From Lepidodermella squamata (Eukaryota; Animalia; Gastrotricha), in assembly GCA_047495785.1 (NCBI GenBank), contig JBLDXI010000010.1, positions 62,001 to 126,000 of the forward strand: DNA of 64,000 bases. Reading direction: 5' to 3'. Below the pieces are notes generated by a model. The model made no database searches. It saw only the letters and a program-made list of their open reading frames with translations, and was not told the origin of the DNA. This document shows positions 46,560 to 55,236 of the stretch, piece by piece. Position 1 is the first letter of the stretch, and each line of letters starts with the position of its first letter. Made by a program: the position numbers and the translations under genes.

Positions 46560-47654
46560 CGAAATGGCATGGTCGCGCAGCAGGACGCTGAGCTCGGCCG
46601 CGGCTAAAATCGCAACATCTCCACCCGTTGGCGGGTCGACGGGAGCAGCCAGGTCAGCCAGTCGTTAACACAATACAAAAATAGTCGTAATAATAATAGT
46701 AATAATAACGACGTGTCGACGCCAGATCAGTTGGGGCTTCTAAACGGGAGAAAAAACAGGACAATGAATGAAATATAACAGCTTGTGTCATAAGGGACGG
46801 CGAACTCAGTGTGTACGACACGAGGCGGAAGTTGCAATAGTAGCCAACTGGGACGACTACGAAGATAATAACTTGAAGACGAATAGTGCAGAGGCCGCCG
46901 CCGTAAGTAAACACTAGTTATCTCGTTCAAGAATGGCCCCTTTTGGACTGTTCTCTCCTGTCTGACATTATGACAGTGTCGAGCGAGAGCACAGGGGAAA
47001 AAAACGTAATGCAAGAACGAACGCATAAAGGTTATCTCGCCTTATAACGTGGGCGTAACACAAAAACCTACTCATTTTTTTGCCTGCTGTAATAACAATA
47101 CACTAATCTAGCTAGATGGTTTTAGCTGTTAACGCTCGCCATTGTTAAGATTGCATTAATAATAATAAAACTCGACCAGTCACAGTCATAGCCCACAACG
47201 TGAAAAAGTATACCAGCCCACCTTTGAAGGTAAATTCTATTGAGGTATACATATACAAGACGTTGCGTAGGCTTTTTCGGCATATTTATATTCACCGCGG
47301 TAGGAAAAAAGCTGGGTCTAAACGTCGACTAATAGGCGCTCTTATCAACACGCGCGTTAACATCTGCTATTATTTCGATATATATGCAGCTGCAGCATTT
47401 TTCATTCATAAATTGCGCCGCGTCTTCTTCATTCATAAAACGCACCGGTGTGTTGAGGAAGTTGAAGCAAATTATTCACGACTTTAGATTAAACACCTAT
47501 TCACACAAAAAATAAGACGTGCATAAATTAACGTGAAATTGATATCATCCAAACTCAACAAACTCCGCCGAGTAAAACCATAAAAAAGTTTGACAATAAA
47601 AAAATTGGCAGTATAATTATTCGTGCATAAGTTTGAGCTTTGAGGTCGATTCTC

Positions 47655-48068
47655 TCACTCCTTCTCCCAACAAAGATTCTTCTCGTAGAAATCAATGACT
47701 AATTGAGGATATTTGAGGTTCGCTTCACTCGCTGTCACCAGTTCAGCTTCAAAAACGCCTTTTCGCTTGACTAGAAACATTAACCCGCCGAATTCATCAG
47801 TCGCGCCTAGAATTTCCTCAGCGGTAGAACGGTCGAGAGTTTTACTATGACTTTCATCGATTGCTTTCGAGTTTTTGAGGTAATCCATCAGTAAATTGTT
47901 AGACGTGAGCCGTAAATTCGACTCGGGCTCCCACGAATTCGAAGATGAACCTCGCCATTTGACTAGAAATTGAGTTTTTCCATTAACTTTCCGGTGCGAC
48001 AAAATTTGTTCGATCTCGAATTCTTCGCACGAATCCGATTCGAAAGCCGGAGTTGAGTTTGCGGCCAT
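47655..48068 (-). CDS. HP1-like protein A: chromo + chromoshadow domains, short hinge (137 aa)
   Basis: [22 protein letters not shown]; AEEILGATD...MFLVK...[15 protein letters not shown]. Confidence 0.92.
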
Positions 48069-48538
48069 GTACAAAAAAGCAGTAAAATCTATAAAAAAAA
48101 TGAATCAGCAATTAGCAAATTATCACTATTTTATTTAATTGAGCGATTAATTAGGGCAGATTTTTTTGCTTTCAATTTTCATAAAATTCAACAACGAAAA
48201 TTGCATCACGCAACGAGAAACAACCTGTAATGAATTAACGTGCACTACATCCCATGTCACCACAACCAGCTGTTTTTATTTTTTCAAATTTATATCGGCG
48301 ACTTGACAGATATGCAGTTAATGCAGAACACGAAGACAAAAAAATATACAACCACGAAAAATTGAGTTTTTTATACAAATATTAGCCAACATTCAAAATG
48401 TTCCAAGAAATCTAGCTTGAGCATTGTGAATTTTACGGCTTAAAAGTTTATTTATTTATGCAAAGGCAAAAAATGCACGAATTTGCAAAAGTTTTTGTCT
48501 CAAAAAAATCAAAATGCAAATTTATTTAGGCAATAAAT

Positions 48539-49354
48539 TCAGGCATCGACCGATCGCGGATGCTGGGCAAGCGTTTCCGGCGCGTCCCACGAGATCCTCT
48601 CCTCGTAAAAATCCAGCACGAGATCGGTGATTTTCACATTCGCCTCGCTGGCCGGGATAAGATCAGCCTCAACAGCACCCTTCCATTTGACTAGGAACAT
48701 TAACTCACCATAATCTTTCGTGGCGCCCAAAATTTTCTCAGCGGGATATCCTTTATCAAACCCGAGCGCTTCAGGCTTTTCGGATTTTTTCGACTTTTTC
48801 GGCGATATTGGCAGGGCAGTTGGTTGTGCGAAAACTGGGGCAGGGGCGGGGGCAGGTTCGTTGCTGCTATTGCTCACCTCCATTTCGGCAGTTTGATTCA
48901 CGCTCAAATTCACAGAATTGCTATCCGTCGTTTCGTTATTAGGTTTCGGCTCTACGTCCTCGTCCGAATCAGATTCGATCCGAACTTTCGCCTTCATCGA
49001 CTTGCGAGTGGTTGAAGATGTATTCGACGAAATTGAAGACGCTCGGCTGAAGGCGCCGAGTGACTTGCGGCGGGGCGGCTTTTCTTTCTCGACTTCTTTC
49101 TTTTTGGATACAATTCCTAGCTTGACGCGTTTGTACTTTTCCGTTCGCTTGAATTCGCGCAGTATATCCGGACAGCCGCTGAGATTCTCCTCAGGCTCCC
49201 ACGTGTTTTCTTCATCGCCGTAATTCTTCCATTTAACGAAGTACTTCATTGTGTTCTTTTCCACTCTACATTTCAAAATTTTCTCCACTTCGAAAATTTC
49301 ATCTTCTGATGAGTGAGTCTCGTCCTCGGTAGTTGAAGGCCTTTTATTTCTCAT
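48539..49354 (-). CDS. HP1-like protein B: chromo + chromoshadow domains (271 aa)
   Basis: FEVEKIL..YFVKWKNY..NTWEPEENL; GFDKGYPAEKILGAT..MFLVKWKG..FYEERISW. Confidence 0.95.
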   Translation of the reverse strand: MRNKRPSTTEDETHSSEDEIFEVEKILKCRVEKNTMKYFVKWKNYGDEENTWEPEENLSGCPDILREFKRTEKYKRVKLGIVSKKKEVEKEKPPRRKSLGAFSRASSISSNTSSTTRKSMKAKVRIESDSDEDVEPKPNNETTDSNSVNLSVNQTAEMEVSNSSNEPAPAPAPVFAQPTALPISPKKSKKSEKPEALGFDKGYPAEKILGATKDYGELMFLVKWKGAVEADLIPASEANVKITDLVLDFYEERISWDAPETLAQHPRSVDA

Positions 49355-49476
49355 TTTTGATTAAACCTCTAGTAAAAAAAACGCATAAATAAAACGATGA
49401 GAACATTTTAATGAGGTCAGAATGAAAGAAACGCGATGAGATTGAAAGAAAAAGCAGTTAAATTAGCGGAATCGAT

Positions 49477-49683
49477 TCAAACCGCCGCTGTTGGGTTGTT
49501 TTCCCTGAATTGCTGCAGCAATTCCTTGCAGTCGCGGAGATTTTCCTCAGGCTCCCAGGTGTTGTCGTCGTCGGTGTAGCTTTCCCATTTCACATAGTAA
49601 AAAGTCTTCCCGTTCTCAACTTTGCTCTTGATGATTTTCTCGACAACAAAGAGATCTTCCTCACTCGAGACGCTGCTTTCCAT
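49477..49683 (-). CDS. Chromodomain-only micro-protein C (68 aa)
   Basis: aaaATG MESSVSSEEDLFVVEKII..YYVKWESYTDDDNTWEPEENL; stop shortly after the domain. Confidence 0.85.
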   Translation of the reverse strand: MESSVSSEEDLFVVEKIIKSKVENGKTFYYVKWESYTDDDNTWEPEENLRDCKELLQQFRENNPTAAV

Positions 49684-49806
49684 TTTGTGTGTGTTAAATT
49701 CTACGTTGAAAAATGATGAAATTTTGAGATTATTTAATTGAGCGCAACTGTAAACTATTGATAGCCAAAACAATGAAAAAAGATGTACAGAATGATTTGT
49801 AAGAGC

Positions 49807-50544
49807 TCAAGGTAAAGCAATTTCACACTGGGCCGTGTCGCTGTTGTAGCAAAATCGTTCTTCGTAAAAATCGAGAACGAGATTCGGGCATTTCGAATTC
49901 GCCTCGTCGGCTAAAATCAAATCAGCTTCGTCGACGCCCTTCCACTTGACTAGAAACATCAAAGCGCCGTTTTTAAATTCGTTCGTCGCGCCGAGAATTT
50001 TCTCAGCCTCGTAGCCCTTGTCAAAACCAAGTTTTTCCTCGGCATCATTCTCGGCGGCGGTGGAATTTTCGATATTAGACACAGGCCGTGAATTCGTTGA
50101 TAAAACCGACTGGTAATCCGACTCAGATTCACTCATTTGTAAAACAGGTACGTTGTGATTAATCGGCTCATCGCCAGCTATTTCGTAAACATCATCAGCT
50201 TCCATTACACTGGACGAACTAGCGATTCCAGATTCGGAAGATGTCGCAACGACTTGAGGCGGCTCACTCGTTGTTGATTTCGAAGAATGAGATTGCGGTT
50301 TCGAAATTCCACGCATTTGCAGCGCGATTTCAGCCCTACGTTGTTTGCCAAGAGGAGACTCGAAAAATTCGTCGATTAGCAGGGGGCAATTCGTTAGAGA
50401 TGCTGGCTCCCATGTATTTTCTTCAGGTGGGTAATTTTCCCACTTGATATGATATTCGATCCGGCCGTCTTGGTATCTACAATCCAAAACTGCCTCGACA
50501 ACGAAAACCTCCTCCTTCACCTGCTTCCGTTTCCTTTTAGGCAT
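49807..50544 (-). CDS. HP1-like protein D: chromo + chromoshadow domains (245 aa)
   Basis: MPKRKRK NLS; FVVEAVL..YHIKWENY..NTWEP; GFDKGYEAEKILGAT..MFLVKWKG..FYEERFCY. Confidence 0.95.
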   Translation of the reverse strand: MPKRKRKQVKEEVFVVEAVLDCRYQDGRIEYHIKWENYPPEENTWEPASLTNCPLLIDEFFESPLGKQRRAEIALQMRGISKPQSHSSKSTTSEPPQVVATSSESGIASSSSVMEADDVYEIAGDEPINHNVPVLQMSESESDYQSVLSTNSRPVSNIENSTAAENDAEEKLGFDKGYEAEKILGATNEFKNGALMFLVKWKGVDEADLILADEANSKCPNLVLDFYEERFCYNSDTAQCEIALP

Positions 50545-50670
50545 TTTTAATAAGTAAAAGCCTAGAAAAGAATGAACATGATATAGCGGCGGAATTAGAA
50601 AAAATGGATGAAAATTATTGTAAATTGAGCATGACAGCGATAGTATCAAGAGTTCAGTCAGTTGAGCAAA

Positions 50671-51436
50671 TTAGACAGCTTCAAGTTTGGCTTTTTTCGA
50701 CCCAGAATTTTCGCACGAGCACGGAGTGAGAATTTTCGAAGCTTCGTCAAGAAAATTAAGAGCGGCATCCAAGTCGGAGCATTGAAGAGATGAGAAATTT
50801 GGATCAGACAGCTTTGATTTAATTTCGGAGAGGCGCTTTTTCAGCTCTTTCTTCTTGCTTTTATGAGGACTCGCGAAACTATTCTCTTCGTCTTCATCAT
50901 CCTCGTCGCTATCAATATCGTCCTCGTCTTCTTCATCTTCATCAGTATCAGTGTCTTCGTCGTCTTCGTAATAATAAGTTCGCGGAGTTGGCCTCGGAGC
51001 GGGTGCTTCCTCTTTCGGTTCCGGTAAAATTTTACCGTCCGCGGATATCCTGCGGCCCAATATACAAGCCAGATGAATGTGTTTACACATTATGACATGG
51101 TCTTCGTAATCAGGGCAAGTGCATGTGCCGAGATGGTAGCAAAAAGAGCATCTGTCACAACGGTCCCCGCAATGGCAATCAGCGTCCTCCGGGCTCGTGT
51201 TCAAATTAACTTTGTACCAACTCAAGCCATCAGACGAGCGAACCTTGTATCGCGCCGCCGTTTCCGACTTGCTTACGAGCTGGATTGCTGAGAATATCAT
51301 ATCGTCTAGAAGGGGAGCCATGATCACGGCCTGAGCGAAATATATGAGTGGAAAATCTTGAAATATAACCAAATATTCGAACCTTCCAGTGCCTGTCTTC
51401 GACATCGCTGGGCCTTCTACGGCGCCTCCCGGGCAT
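50671..51436 (-). CDS. SWIM zinc-finger protein 1 (resembles a Mutator transposase C-terminus) with acidic tract
   Basis: Exon 51436-51383 (MPGRRRRRPSDVEDRHWK), 52-nt intron, exon 51330-50671; YKVRS..WYKV..C..C..CYHLGTCTCPDY...CKHIH. Confidence 0.85.
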
Positions 51437-51619
51437 TCAATTCAAGTTATCCACTAAGTAAACAACAAACTTGATTGAGATTTCGACACAAGCTTGATCT
51501 TAATTTGGCTCAATTCAACGAAGAAAATTGAAAAGTTGGGTTAAAATGTTGTGAAACAACAATGAGATTAAAATTGAGCATGAAATTAGTCAGTTTAAGA
51601 TTCAGTCATTCCGAGCAAT

Positions 51620-52356
51620 TCAAGCAGCCTCAATCTTAGCTCTTTTCGGACGAGAACGTTCGCAAGAACAGGGGATGAGAGCTTTAGATGCCTCACGAAG
51701 ATGAGTTAAAGCCAACTCCACGTCTGAGATTTGAAGTTTCGGGTCAACGAGTTTGGCCTTAATTTCAGCGAGGCTTTTCTTGATTTCACTCTTCTTCGAG
51801 TCAATCGAATTTTCCTGGCCTTCTTGATCATCGCCGTTGTCATCGTCACCATCGTCGTCATCATCACTATCAGCCTCAGAATTTGAGTCGGCACTAGCAT
51901 TGTTAGATTTCACCCGACCATTGGATGAAAGCTTGTGACCCAGAATGTTAGCGAGGTGCATGTGTTTGCACATCATGCCATGATCCGTGTAATCGGGACA
52001 GGTGCAACTGCCAAGATGGCAGCAGCTTGAACACTCCTGACACAGATCTTCGCAAAACAAGTAGTCGGGAATGCATTCGTTCTCTGTTGCCTCGGGGCAG
52101 AGGTTCAACCATACGTCATACCACGACGAACCATCAGAGGAGCAGACTTTATAGCTAGCTTCTTCGTCTGATTTTCTAACAAGTTTAATAACCGAAGCGA
52201 TGTCTTTGTCGTTTTTAGGAGCCATGTGCATGGCCTAAACATAGATATCTCATATGTCGTGGCCCAAGCATGGCAAAAAAAATAGAAACAGACCTTGATG
52301 TGCCGGCCATACATGTCATCAGCGCGCCGGTTAGAACGTCGACGTCTCCAAGACAT
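51620..52356 (-). CDS. SWIM zinc-finger protein 2, tandem paralogue
   Basis: Exon 52356-52294 (MSWRRRR..RHIK), 59-nt intron at the same position as in paralogue 1, exon 52234-51620; CCHLGSCTCPDY...CKHMH; homologous 3' flank. Confidence 0.85.
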
Positions 52357-55236
52357 TAATTAAAGGTACAAGAGGAAGAAAAACTAAAAAAATACACCAA
52401 GCCTGACGTGTGATGGTGCTAATGTCAATTGATGAACGGAAAGGCAATCAGCGGAATTCGAAATATTCTAAGAGCTTCAAAGGAATCGTAAAGCGTAAAG
52501 GTTCTCCTTATTCTTCATTATGAATGTAATAAGTTTGCCCCATTAGATTGATAGAAAAAATGTGCACGTGATGGAGAAAACCTCATCTACCTAATCAAAC
52601 ATCGAACAAATAACCTACCAACAGGCCCAAGCCTCATAAAATAAAAAAAGTAAGACCATATCACGAGTCTCTCGCGCATTAAGATATAAAATGTTCATCA
52701 TTCCGGAATCACTGAAATTTCATAGATGATTCGAGGCATTAAACTATCAAAACCTATCGAAATAAGATGCGTCTGGATCAGACGATTACAAATAATAATG
52801 AAACTCGTTTTTATTGTGAGAAATGAAAATTGCCCTACTCTCAAAAGATTGAAATTGTAAGGCGCACTCAATTATAAAAATAAAGATTGAAATATTATCG
52901 TGTAAATATTCAATCATGCATAAATGTCATAAGGGGTGATCGCCTTACTCTCATCCTGTAAACCTAATCCTTACAATTAATGAAAATGTCTCAGAAATTA
53001 CGACAGGCAGCTATAAGTTCGAACGCTTTTCCAAAAAAGAAGAACGATGATCGAGAATTGTCAAATATCAACCCACGGGAAGCTCGAATATGACACGACA
53101 CGCTGAAAACAGAATAACGCAGATCCGCGAAGTCTCCTATGAATTGCGGACCACCGCCCACCGCAGAAAAGATTAGACCATTGGAAAGGCGTAAAAACCA
53201 GCAGAAAGAAGCCGCAGGCGTAGAGGGAACCCGCAGATGCTTTAGATTCCGAATTCATATACATCCGCCTCCAGCTCGATCAAAAAACGACGATCTTAGC
53301 AGATTTTACGATCGATAAATTCATTTCAAAGGCTCCCGATCATTCCCCTACAAACACACCGCGATAGGTTCAAATTCAACTTGAGTGAAGAGTGTACTGC
53401 ACAATGCACAAGACGTCAAGCGCGGTCCTTCCCTTCAGCAAACGACGCGGAATCCGTCACGAAAAAACAGCGGGAAACCGCTCATCGAAAAATTCGCGGT
53501 GGTGGAGGATTGAAGGTTAATGCTTAAATCAGTAAAATGTTATTTTAAATAAAAAATTGATACAAAAGCATGCATTTTTCTGCAAAAATCGATTATTATG
53601 AAAAATTTGTGACTTTGCTTTGCCGCATGTTTTCAGTGAGCAAAAATCTCACCCCGGGCAGGTTTTTCTGCGTTCGATTTTCTTGATTTTACTATTGTGG
53701 TCCACGGGCTGACTCCGGAGTCATTTGGACTCATTCGAGCATTTTGACTCCTGTCTGACTCCGATACCAATCCAAATATGAAACCATTCCGCAACGAGTC
53801 ACAAACTTGGCCAAAACTTACTTAGGGTCTGAATTTGACTCCAAAACGAACTGTCTTTGACTCCACACTGCTTATTTATCATGGCCTAAGTCCTGGTCAA
53901 ACAAATCGGAGAAGTATCGTTAACCGCTTTGAACTTGGCAGCGTGTTTTCATCAGCACCAACTTCCACTTATCCGAGAAGTCTCATCATTTGTTATGGAT
54001 TGTTATAGACCAATACTAGTTGATAGAAACAAAAATTACATTTGCATCACCTTCCGTTGGCGTGCTGCCAACTTTTGCTGCTAAGTTCAGCTTTTACCAT
54101 GTAAAATGGGTGCATCGATTTGGGACCCCATTTGTTATATCTGACAGCAACACATAACAAACGTGAGAATTTGTTATATAACGTAACAAATGACGCTGAT
54201 TGCGATGGTGATTTTTATTTTACCATCAGCATCACCTGGACAGGTGTGGATCGAAAAAACCAAGTATGGTGGCTTACCTGAGCAGGTAGGGTGCGTCCCA
54301 TGACCTCGAGATACATTTTTTCGGATTCTCCGTGGTAAATTACCATGTTTCACAAAGTATTGCGAACTTTCGATTCATATAACTCGAGAAATAAAAGCGA
54401 GTTTAACTAAAGTTGCAATTTCAATGTCGATTATGGCAGTTTGCAATGAAAATTACTTGCTTGGCAGCGGAAGCTTAGATTATGTTACATTAACTTCACA
54501 TTTTAATGAGTGCACTAGGGTAAAAAATGATGCAGAAATTAACATCTCTATTGTCTAACGAATATAATTGACGGCTTGGCGGTTAATTGACCACGTGATA
54601 CGTAGCTGGCTATTCAAATTTAAAATGGGTCTGAATTGAATTAGATTACGATATTTTTTTAACTGACATGCAGCGCTACGTAACACATGTGGAATTTTAA
54701 TTCTAGAAGATAAAAAGTAGCCCTGAAAACGTTGGTGATGTTGATTTTATTATTACCTATAATATTTTATTCTGTTAATATGACCTTTTCGTGCGAGAAA
54801 GTCAATAATATTCGTTACCTTCTTTGAGGAATCATTGTTTAATTTGTTTATTGATACTCTTAAATTTTGGAATACTTAAGACCAGCAAGTGCTATGGTTT
54901 ATTCTGATACGAAAATTAATTTCTATTTCAAAGATGTATGCTGTATGCCTATATAATAAAAACGAAACACGAAAATATAACGCTCTCGATATCGATTGAT
55001 TTTCCAACGGAAAAATAATTTGAAATTTTCCCGCCAAAAACTATTTTACCGCCAAATATTCCCGCCAAAACCCTAGTCAAAATTTGAATTTTCCAAAATT
55101 CCAACGGTCACTCGCGTCATCTAACGGTCACTCCTATTTTTGAATTTTATGTCACCTCGTACTGTCACTTGCATCGAAATGTAATGAAGTGTCATGGTAA
55201 TAAAAACGAAACACGAAAATATAACGCTCTATTTAT

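Follow-up and report, generated by a model that had tools for sequence, protein, structure and literature searches.

Six genes drawn from only two families lie packed on one strand of a gastrotrich genome, and together they probably form a single compact, co-directional operon, resolved by spliced-leader trans-splicing and built from two founder genes through ancient tandem duplication (probability about 0.7). The array occupies the minus strand at positions 47655-52356 of a 64,000-nucleotide (nt) stretch of contig JBLDXI010000010.1 from Lepidodermella squamata, hereafter the window, where it consists of six open reading frames (ORFs) arranged, in the order of transcription, as SWIM2, SWIM1, HP1-D, the chromo-only gene C, HP1-B and HP1-A. 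The coding gaps along this order are 183, 126, 123, 122 and 470 nt, and no gene of any other family lies within the unit. A previous account of this DNA, made by reading the sequence alone, had described six intact same-strand genes in this order, four of HP1/chromodomain type and two encoding Mutator-type SWIM fingers. This description has stood throughout: all six ORFs are intact and lie on the minus strand, RNA contigs cover them, the four HP1-type products match the expected Pfam domains and the two SWIM products are homologous to the tails of Mutator-like (MULE) transposases.

Transcripts and RNA processing of the array

Three public sequencing runs (X1, X2 and X3) contain the stretch and all were placed on positions 47300-52800. 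X2 behaves as DNA, with every bin covered, a flat depth of ~77-90 over the array and its flanks and contigs of up to 130 kb. The contigs of X1 and X3 are RNA-like, being devoid of two short GT..AG introns (52293-52235 and 51382-51331) that lie in the SWIM genes. All six genes are represented in the X1 RNA contigs and five of them in those of X3.

Direct evidence for leader trans-splicing is provided by X3. At gene C, a contig spanning 49449-49702 carries 19 foreign leader letters upstream, and at SWIM1 the 16 foreign letters upstream of another contig agree with the leader found at gene C. In the SWIM1 case the alignment extends 9 letters into the genome; as seven of these nine letters, which precede the acceptor, fit the end of the leader, the SWIM1 leader junction is placed at the AG at 51455-51454. 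The combined leader is at least 25 nt long, GCGATTGAATATTAAATTTTCTGAG, ending TTTTCTGAG. It is not encoded within the 64 kb window and its sequence was not found by a literature search.

The 3' ends of the transcripts are equally informative. An X3 contig of SWIM1 ends at 50595 and continues into a non-templated run of A residues (TTTTTTTT on the plus strand), which is the poly(A) tail, and this site lies just 34 nt before the first exon base of HP1-D (50561). The RNA 3' ends along the array are as follows.

51498, minus strand: SWIM2 RNA 3' end, at most 45 nt from the SWIM1 acceptor
50595, minus strand: SWIM1 RNA 3' end with poly(A) tail, 34 nt from the HP1-D acceptor
49730, minus strand: HP1-D RNA 3' end, at most 30 nt from the gene C acceptor
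49447-49449, minus strand: gene C RNA 3' end (X1 and X3), 28 nt past the stop codon; the next exon starts at 49368
48223, minus strand: HP1-B RNA 3' end, ~130 nt from the HP1-A acceptor

Since there is no room for a promoter at three or more of these junctions, the array is interpreted as a spliced-leader-resolved operon. Its promoter very probably lies upstream of 52384, and the primary transcript would be polycistronic, such that the six proteins would be made together. Co-expression of the genes, proposed earlier as a possibility, is accordingly likely to proceed from one promoter, given the packing of the genes and their spliced-leader processing.

A number of observations weigh against this interpretation. 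Of the six genes, two (SWIM1 and C) show the leader, which is not seen on HP1-D, HP1-B or HP1-A; no listed RNA contig bridges two genes, and no polycistronic precursor is seen; the gap of 470 nt between HP1-B and HP1-A could contain an internal promoter; and the records of all three runs are assembled contigs, which give no strand, expression level or tissue. The missing bridging RNA is also what would be expected if the array were not an operon at all, rather six closely spaced genes with promoters of their own, each trans-spliced singly. In trans-splicing animals, spliced leaders are also added to monocistronic genes, and two of the gaps (183 and 470 nt) are long enough to accommodate promoters. 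However, a poly(A) site 34 nt, and contig ends 30-45 nt, from the next acceptor leave no such room at three junctions at least, which makes this arrangement of independent genes improbable and leaves the operon as the preferred reading.

One recurrent element touches on the processing of these RNAs. Four copies of the octamer GCTCAATT lie on the coding strand of the array (48137-48144, 49736-49743, 50623-50630 and 51572-51579), each within a 3' untranslated region (UTR). In both SWIM genes the octamer starts 41 nt past the stop codon; in SWIM1, 28 nt separate its end from the poly(A) site. The window as a whole contains 8 copies over both strands, compared with 4.3 expected. The octamer may be part of a 3'-end or operon-processing signal.

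SWIM1 and SWIM2 derive from the tail of a transposase

Both SWIM genes are composed of two exons, with full products of 225 amino acids (aa; SWIM2) and 237 aa (SWIM1). Their features, with coding sequence abbreviated as CDS, are given below in the order of transcription.

52385-52384, minus strand: candidate acceptor AG of SWIM2, recognized from its sequence
52294..52383, minus strand: SWIM2 exon 1; CDS 52356-52294, 21 aa with an Arg-rich N-terminus, from in-frame translation
52235..52293, minus strand: SWIM2 intron, 59 nt, GT..AG; joint 52233/52293 with plus-strand ends CT..AC, in X1 and X3
51620..52234, minus strand: SWIM2 exon 2; 204 aa plus stop, comprising an extended SWIM finger, acidic linker, C-terminal helical region and basic tail
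51383..51453, minus strand: SWIM1 exon 1; CDS 51436-51383, 18 aa, Arg-rich, following the trans-splice acceptor AG at 51455-51454
51331..51382, minus strand: SWIM1 intron, 52 nt, GT..AG; joint 51329/51382 in two X1 contigs and one X3 contig
50671..51330, minus strand: SWIM1 exon 2; 219 aa plus stop
50595..50670, minus strand: SWIM1 3'UTR, ending at the poly(A) site at ~50595

In SWIM2, RNA contigs of both X1 and X3 join 52294 to 52234, and an X3 contig covering 51623-52233 of exon 2 is identical to the window. The approximate 5' end of this gene is marked by an X1 contig breakpoint at 52381. The position of the intron is common to the two genes, and the first exons encode strongly basic peptides (isoelectric point ~11.7-11.9), each of which is in frame with the main ORF once the intron is removed. 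Both first exons (51383-51436 and 52294-52356) end in an R-H-x-K motif that recalls a conserved R-H located upstream of the finger in the transposase relatives; the spacing to the finger is ~11 residues longer than in those relatives, and homology across the intron is uncertain. X1 contigs also contain 'opposite strands' joints at 47877/47983, 52216/52381, 52488/52589 and 52641/52747, which are probably assembly fold-backs; that at 52381 falls on the predicted SWIM2 5' end.

The SWIM exon-2 products, rather than the joined two-exon proteins, were used for all database searches and AlphaFold models. SWIM1 and SWIM2 share 44% identity (E 3e-51) and all ten Cys/His residues of the pattern C-x3-C-x2-C-x2-C-x-H-x3-C-x-C-x9-C-x-H-x-H are kept in both. 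This ten-ligand finger is preceded by a beta region, W-x-V-x-S ... Y-x-V, and its second half corresponds, in both proteins, to the classical SWIM signature CxCxnCxH. A word-indexed homologue search with SWIM1 yielded no match, and an exhaustive HMMER search of 1.84 billion representatives returned 135 matches at E <= 1e-3, the best at 1.6e-14 and none better than 1e-30. These matches are confined to the finger or the C-terminal region, nearly all of them being centred on profile positions 50-100. Among the best 60 of the 135 homologues, 11 carry a MULE domain, 8 the ZSWIM1-3 RNaseH-like domain and 8 the Pfam SWIM domain.

The position of the match within the longer homologues points to the origin of the SWIM genes. 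SWIM1 and SWIM2 align with the last ~200 residues of MULE proteins of ~730 aa, and with the tails of P0142, P0130 and P0129. In the long homologues the match, at the extreme C-terminus, runs on into a linker that is variable or acidic, then a helical segment and finally a basic K/R tail, all three of which are also found in SWIM1 and SWIM2. A metagenome scan with the SWIM pair likewise recovered a single locus (L003), which is a transposase tail that aligns with both proteins. The MULE DDE catalytic domain (PF10551) was not detected by Pfam in either protein and this, together with total lengths of 225 and 237 aa, identifies SWIM1 and SWIM2 as derivatives of transposases rather than transposases. 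The best database match, P0121 from the leaf beetle Gonioctena quinquepunctata (384 aa), consists of three tandem extended SWIM modules and nothing else, and may be another independent domestication of a transposase tail.

Predicted structures are consistent with this assignment. The AlphaFold model of the N-domain (predicted local distance difference test (pLDDT) score 87.5, predicted template modelling score 0.78) contains three beta strands, a zinc knuckle region and two helices. In the AlphaFold 2 model of SWIM1 exon 2, residues 10-100 have a pLDDT of ~90 and are followed by an acidic linker, which is disordered, and by a helical hairpin spanning 155-201. SWIM-annotated clusters account for five of the ten rows listed by an Atlas shape search, with template modelling (TM) scores of 0.51-0.55 by query, and a 737-aa arthropod MULE/ZSWIM1-3 cluster is matched with a TM score of 0.62 over 79 residues (root-mean-square deviation 2.6).

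Other searches were less favourable to a SWIM assignment. The Pfam SWIM model (PF04434) gave no match at E <= 0.1 on either protein, this model being short (38 positions) and weak, with matches to only 8 of the 60 nearest homologues at E <= 0.01. Fold matches in the PDB are weak, the best SWIM-bearing chain being ZSWIM8 at a Z score of 3.7, tied with unrelated folds. With the full model, Foldseek and VIA comparisons with the PDB retrieved nothing beyond generic helical hairpins, and with the N-domain they gave scores of Z <= 4; a PDB sequence search returned low-complexity acidic matches only, and an Atlas feature search weak leads only. Considering the alignment with MULE tails, the MULE-bearing homologues and the Atlas match together, we conclude that SWIM1 and SWIM2 represent the C-terminal part of a Mutator-like transposase, domesticated without its catalytic core. 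They would be expected to act as nuclear zinc-finger adaptors.

Four divergent HP1 paralogues

The four HP1-type genes, listed in the order of transcription, have the following features, the start codons given being the likely ones (50544, 49683, 49354 and 48068 for D, C, B and A, respectively).

49807..50561, minus strand: HP1-D; CDS 50544-49807, 245 aa; candidate acceptor AG at 50563-50562; chromodomain and chromoshadow domain
49477..49700, minus strand: chromo-only gene C; CDS 49683-49477, 68 aa; leader junction at the acceptor AG at 49702-49701
48223..49368, minus strand: HP1-B; CDS 49354-48539, 271 aa; chromodomain, long hinge and chromoshadow domain; 3'UTR to at least 48223
47655..48088, minus strand: HP1-A; CDS 48068-47655, 137 aa; candidate acceptor AG at 48090-48089; mini-HP1

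HP1-D is covered by an X3 contig running from 50055 to 49730 and by X1 over 49805-50016, HP1-B by a single X1 contig (48223-49373) and HP1-A by an X1 contig at 47636-47823, with X1 depth across 47484-48035. Pfam identifies both Chromo and Chromo_shadow domains in HP1-A (E 7e-13 and 3e-21, respectively), HP1-B (2e-24 and 7e-22) and HP1-D (6e-22 and 2e-21), and in gene C a Chromo domain (3e-19) with no chromoshadow domain. All four products pass the Chromo model (PF00385) at 48.8-85.5 bits against a cut-off of 25.1, A being the weakest at 48.8 and the other three scoring 69-86, and A, B and D match the full length of the Chromo_shadow model (PF01393) at 75.6-77.7 bits. Gene C, which ends 10 residues past its chromodomain, is an HP1-derived chromo-only protein and not a full HP1.

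Alignment to canonical HP1s shows that the F/W/Y aromatic cage is kept in B, C and D, which are thus predicted to read H3K9 methylation through it. In HP1-A, whose chromodomain is divergent, the F and W are present and the third aromatic has been lost through a 2-residue deletion; this protein has almost no hinge and an intact chromoshadow domain. A, B and D would be expected to dimerise via the chromoshadow domain. The C-terminal Trp of this domain, which contacts PxVxL peptides in characterised HP1s, is kept in A and B and is a Tyr in D.

The paralogues are 40-50% identical to one another in the chromodomain, rising to 60-69% in the chromoshadow domain. When they are placed in a tree alongside 45 other HP1s, B groups with D as its sister (Shimodaira-Hasegawa-like approximate likelihood ratio test, 94), and none of the four array members has a close relative, all of them lying on long branches (1.2-3.9, the median being 0.33). 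A tree that constrains the four together is not rejected, being 2.15 log-likelihood units higher (approximately unbiased test, p-AU 0.56); a single local expansion of HP1 is therefore compatible with the data and is not proven by them. Exact-protein look-ups for HP1-A, HP1-B, C and HP1-D found none on record, and the contigs that carry the best full-length HP1 matches (L001 and L002) have no SWIM gene or second HP1 gene nearby.

Origin, selection and copy number

Two founder genes would suffice to explain the content of the array. An HP1 gene would have been the first, giving rise by old, in-place tandem duplication to four fast-diverging paralogues, among which B is the most canonical, D has an altered peptide-binding end of the chromoshadow domain, C retains a chromodomain alone and A is a hinge-less mini-HP1 with a degenerate methyl-lysine cage. 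The second founder would have been a domesticated MULE transposase fragment, from which the two SWIM paralogues would have arisen and of which only the C-terminal extended SWIM finger, acidic linker, helical hairpin and basic tail would have been retained. Across the paralogous domains, nonsynonymous divergence (dN) is 0.23-0.63 and synonymous divergence (dS) is saturated, indicating that the duplications are old and that the copies have been constrained. A tblastn search of the 64 kb window with all six proteins found no additional HP1 or SWIM copy.

The descent of the SWIM proteins from MULE tails also allows a more prosaic explanation, in which the SWIM ORFs are transposon cargo or decaying MULE remnants, perhaps tied to a repeat-rich stretch 2.6 kb upstream. 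Homology to the transposase tails is what this explanation has in its favour. Against this, both SWIM genes have intact ORFs, carry their intron at the same position and begin with a basic exon that is read in frame; their mRNAs are spliced, leader-capped and polyadenylated; all ten ligands have been kept at 44% identity, with dN far below saturated dS; and the DNA depth is that of a single copy, with no terminal inverted repeats or long repeats flanking the array and with internal repeats limited to the paralogous domains. Transposon cargo was rejected on the grounds of the single-copy depth, the absence of flanking repeats and the processed mRNAs, and SWIM genes of this kind would be very hard to reconcile with it. 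Of the possibilities that the sequence-only reading had raised against its own proposal, that of a multi-copy transposon cargo is contradicted by depth and flanks. Old duplication of two host genes under constraint remains the preferred account of how the array was assembled.

A perfect 33-nt direct repeat lies elsewhere in the window, with copies at 54954-54986 and 55198-55230, 244 nt apart. The genes that flank the array are unrelated to it and include those for a WD40 protein, a TBC-like protein, cathepsin L and orphans.

Is there a partnership between the HP1 and SWIM proteins?

The confinement of the unit to HP1 and SWIM families raises the question as to whether the array is also a functional module, in which the SWIM proteins serve as dedicated guides, adaptors or antagonists of the HP1 paralogues and the operon ensures their stoichiometric co-expression. 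A number of features are in keeping with this proposal. Shared RNA processing implies co-expression. All six products look nuclear or chromatin-type, the nuclear localisation being predicted only, from the basic N- and C-termini. The long HP1 branches resemble those of specialised paralogues. In addition, the DNA run X2 differs from the window in the SWIM1 finger region (51021-51224) by 15 base changes in 204 nt, such that 12 codons are replaced and 1 is changed silently, with every ligand kept, while X1 and X3 match the window exactly in this region. Among the differences listed, the other genes together have 14 silent changes in X2 and 7 replacements, so that replacements are apparently in excess in the SWIM1 finger (12 of 13 codons; Fisher p 0.001).

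However, the divergent X2 stretch could be a misplaced paralogue; the X2 version of SWIM1 is either this or a fast-evolving allele. The association between the two families amounts to a single adjacency, a literature search gave nothing relevant linking HP1 with SWIM proteins, and neither SWIM protein contains a PxVxL-type chromoshadow-binding motif ([PLCVI]xVx[LMVI]). A canonical PxVxL interaction between HP1 and SWIM proteins was rejected on this last ground. Operon packing and duplication are sufficient to explain the adjacency, and a partnership is not needed to account for the data. A functional module thus remains a tentative proposal, a physical HP1-SWIM partnership being possible and rather less likely than its absence, and the more specific idea, in which the SWIM proteins evolve fast and either confer specificity on the co-transcribed HP1 paralogues or act against silencing, is more doubtful still. 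If true, the operon would represent a self-contained heterochromatin-targeting system derived from a domesticated Mutator C-terminal domain, in which an HP1 reader and a SWIM guide are held at fixed stoichiometry by polycistronic expression.

Comparison with known systems

Expansion of HP1 genes and domestication of transposases are each already known; a leader-spliced unit that unites diverged HP1s with finger genes derived from a transposase tail is a testable candidate for the acquisition of a reader partner outside flies. Read conservatively, the array still records how HP1 has expanded in an animal lineage that is poorly sampled, with one member that is chromo-only and another that is a cage-less mini-HP1. 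It also offers a minimal MULE domestication, in which the tail alone has been kept, and direct RNA evidence for leader trans-splicing, with a gap of 34 nt between a poly(A) site and the next exon.

FHY3/FAR1 and the animal ZSWIM proteins are products of domesticated MULE transposase genes. The MUSTANG family is of the same origin (PMC3435246). Like all of these, SWIM1 and SWIM2 are MULE-descended host genes that have kept the SWIM finger under purifying selection. MUSTANG, FHY3/FAR1 and ZSWIM, however, retain most of the transposase including the MULE core, whereas SWIM1 and SWIM2 consist solely of the C-terminal ~200 residues and a new Arg-rich 5' exon.

In Diptera, HP1 has expanded recurrently in a lineage-specific manner, some of the resulting paralogues being partial (Levine et al. 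2012, PMC3380853; Helleu and Levine 2018, PMC6188558), and a germline bias is typical of the fly paralogues (PMC3380853, PMC6188558). As in these expansions, fast-evolving paralogues stand in the array beside canonical-looking ones, one member has only a chromodomain and the long branches suggest specialisation. In contrast to the dipteran genes, the paralogues described here form an old tandem array, with saturated dS, within one leader-spliced unit of a poorly sampled, non-dipteran invertebrate. Guidance of an HP1 variant by a zinc-finger protein has a precedent in Rhino and Kipferl (Baumgartner et al. 2022, PMC9531945; PMC11245307). The array resembles this pair in its proposed logic only, that of a specialised HP1 and a zinc-finger specificity factor. 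Unlike the SWIM proteins of the array, Kipferl is a ZAD-C2H2 protein that is not transposase-derived and that binds the Rhino chromodomain; the extended SWIM finger is unrelated to this finger type, and the array is known here from its genes, RNA contigs and predicted structures.

Operons resolved by spliced leaders occur in nematodes, tunicates, rotifers and other animals. The array shares with them its single coding strand, the very short distances from poly(A) site to acceptor and a common leader on downstream genes. It is distinguished from the known operons of this type by its content, which comprises two duplicated families rather than a mixture of housekeeping genes.

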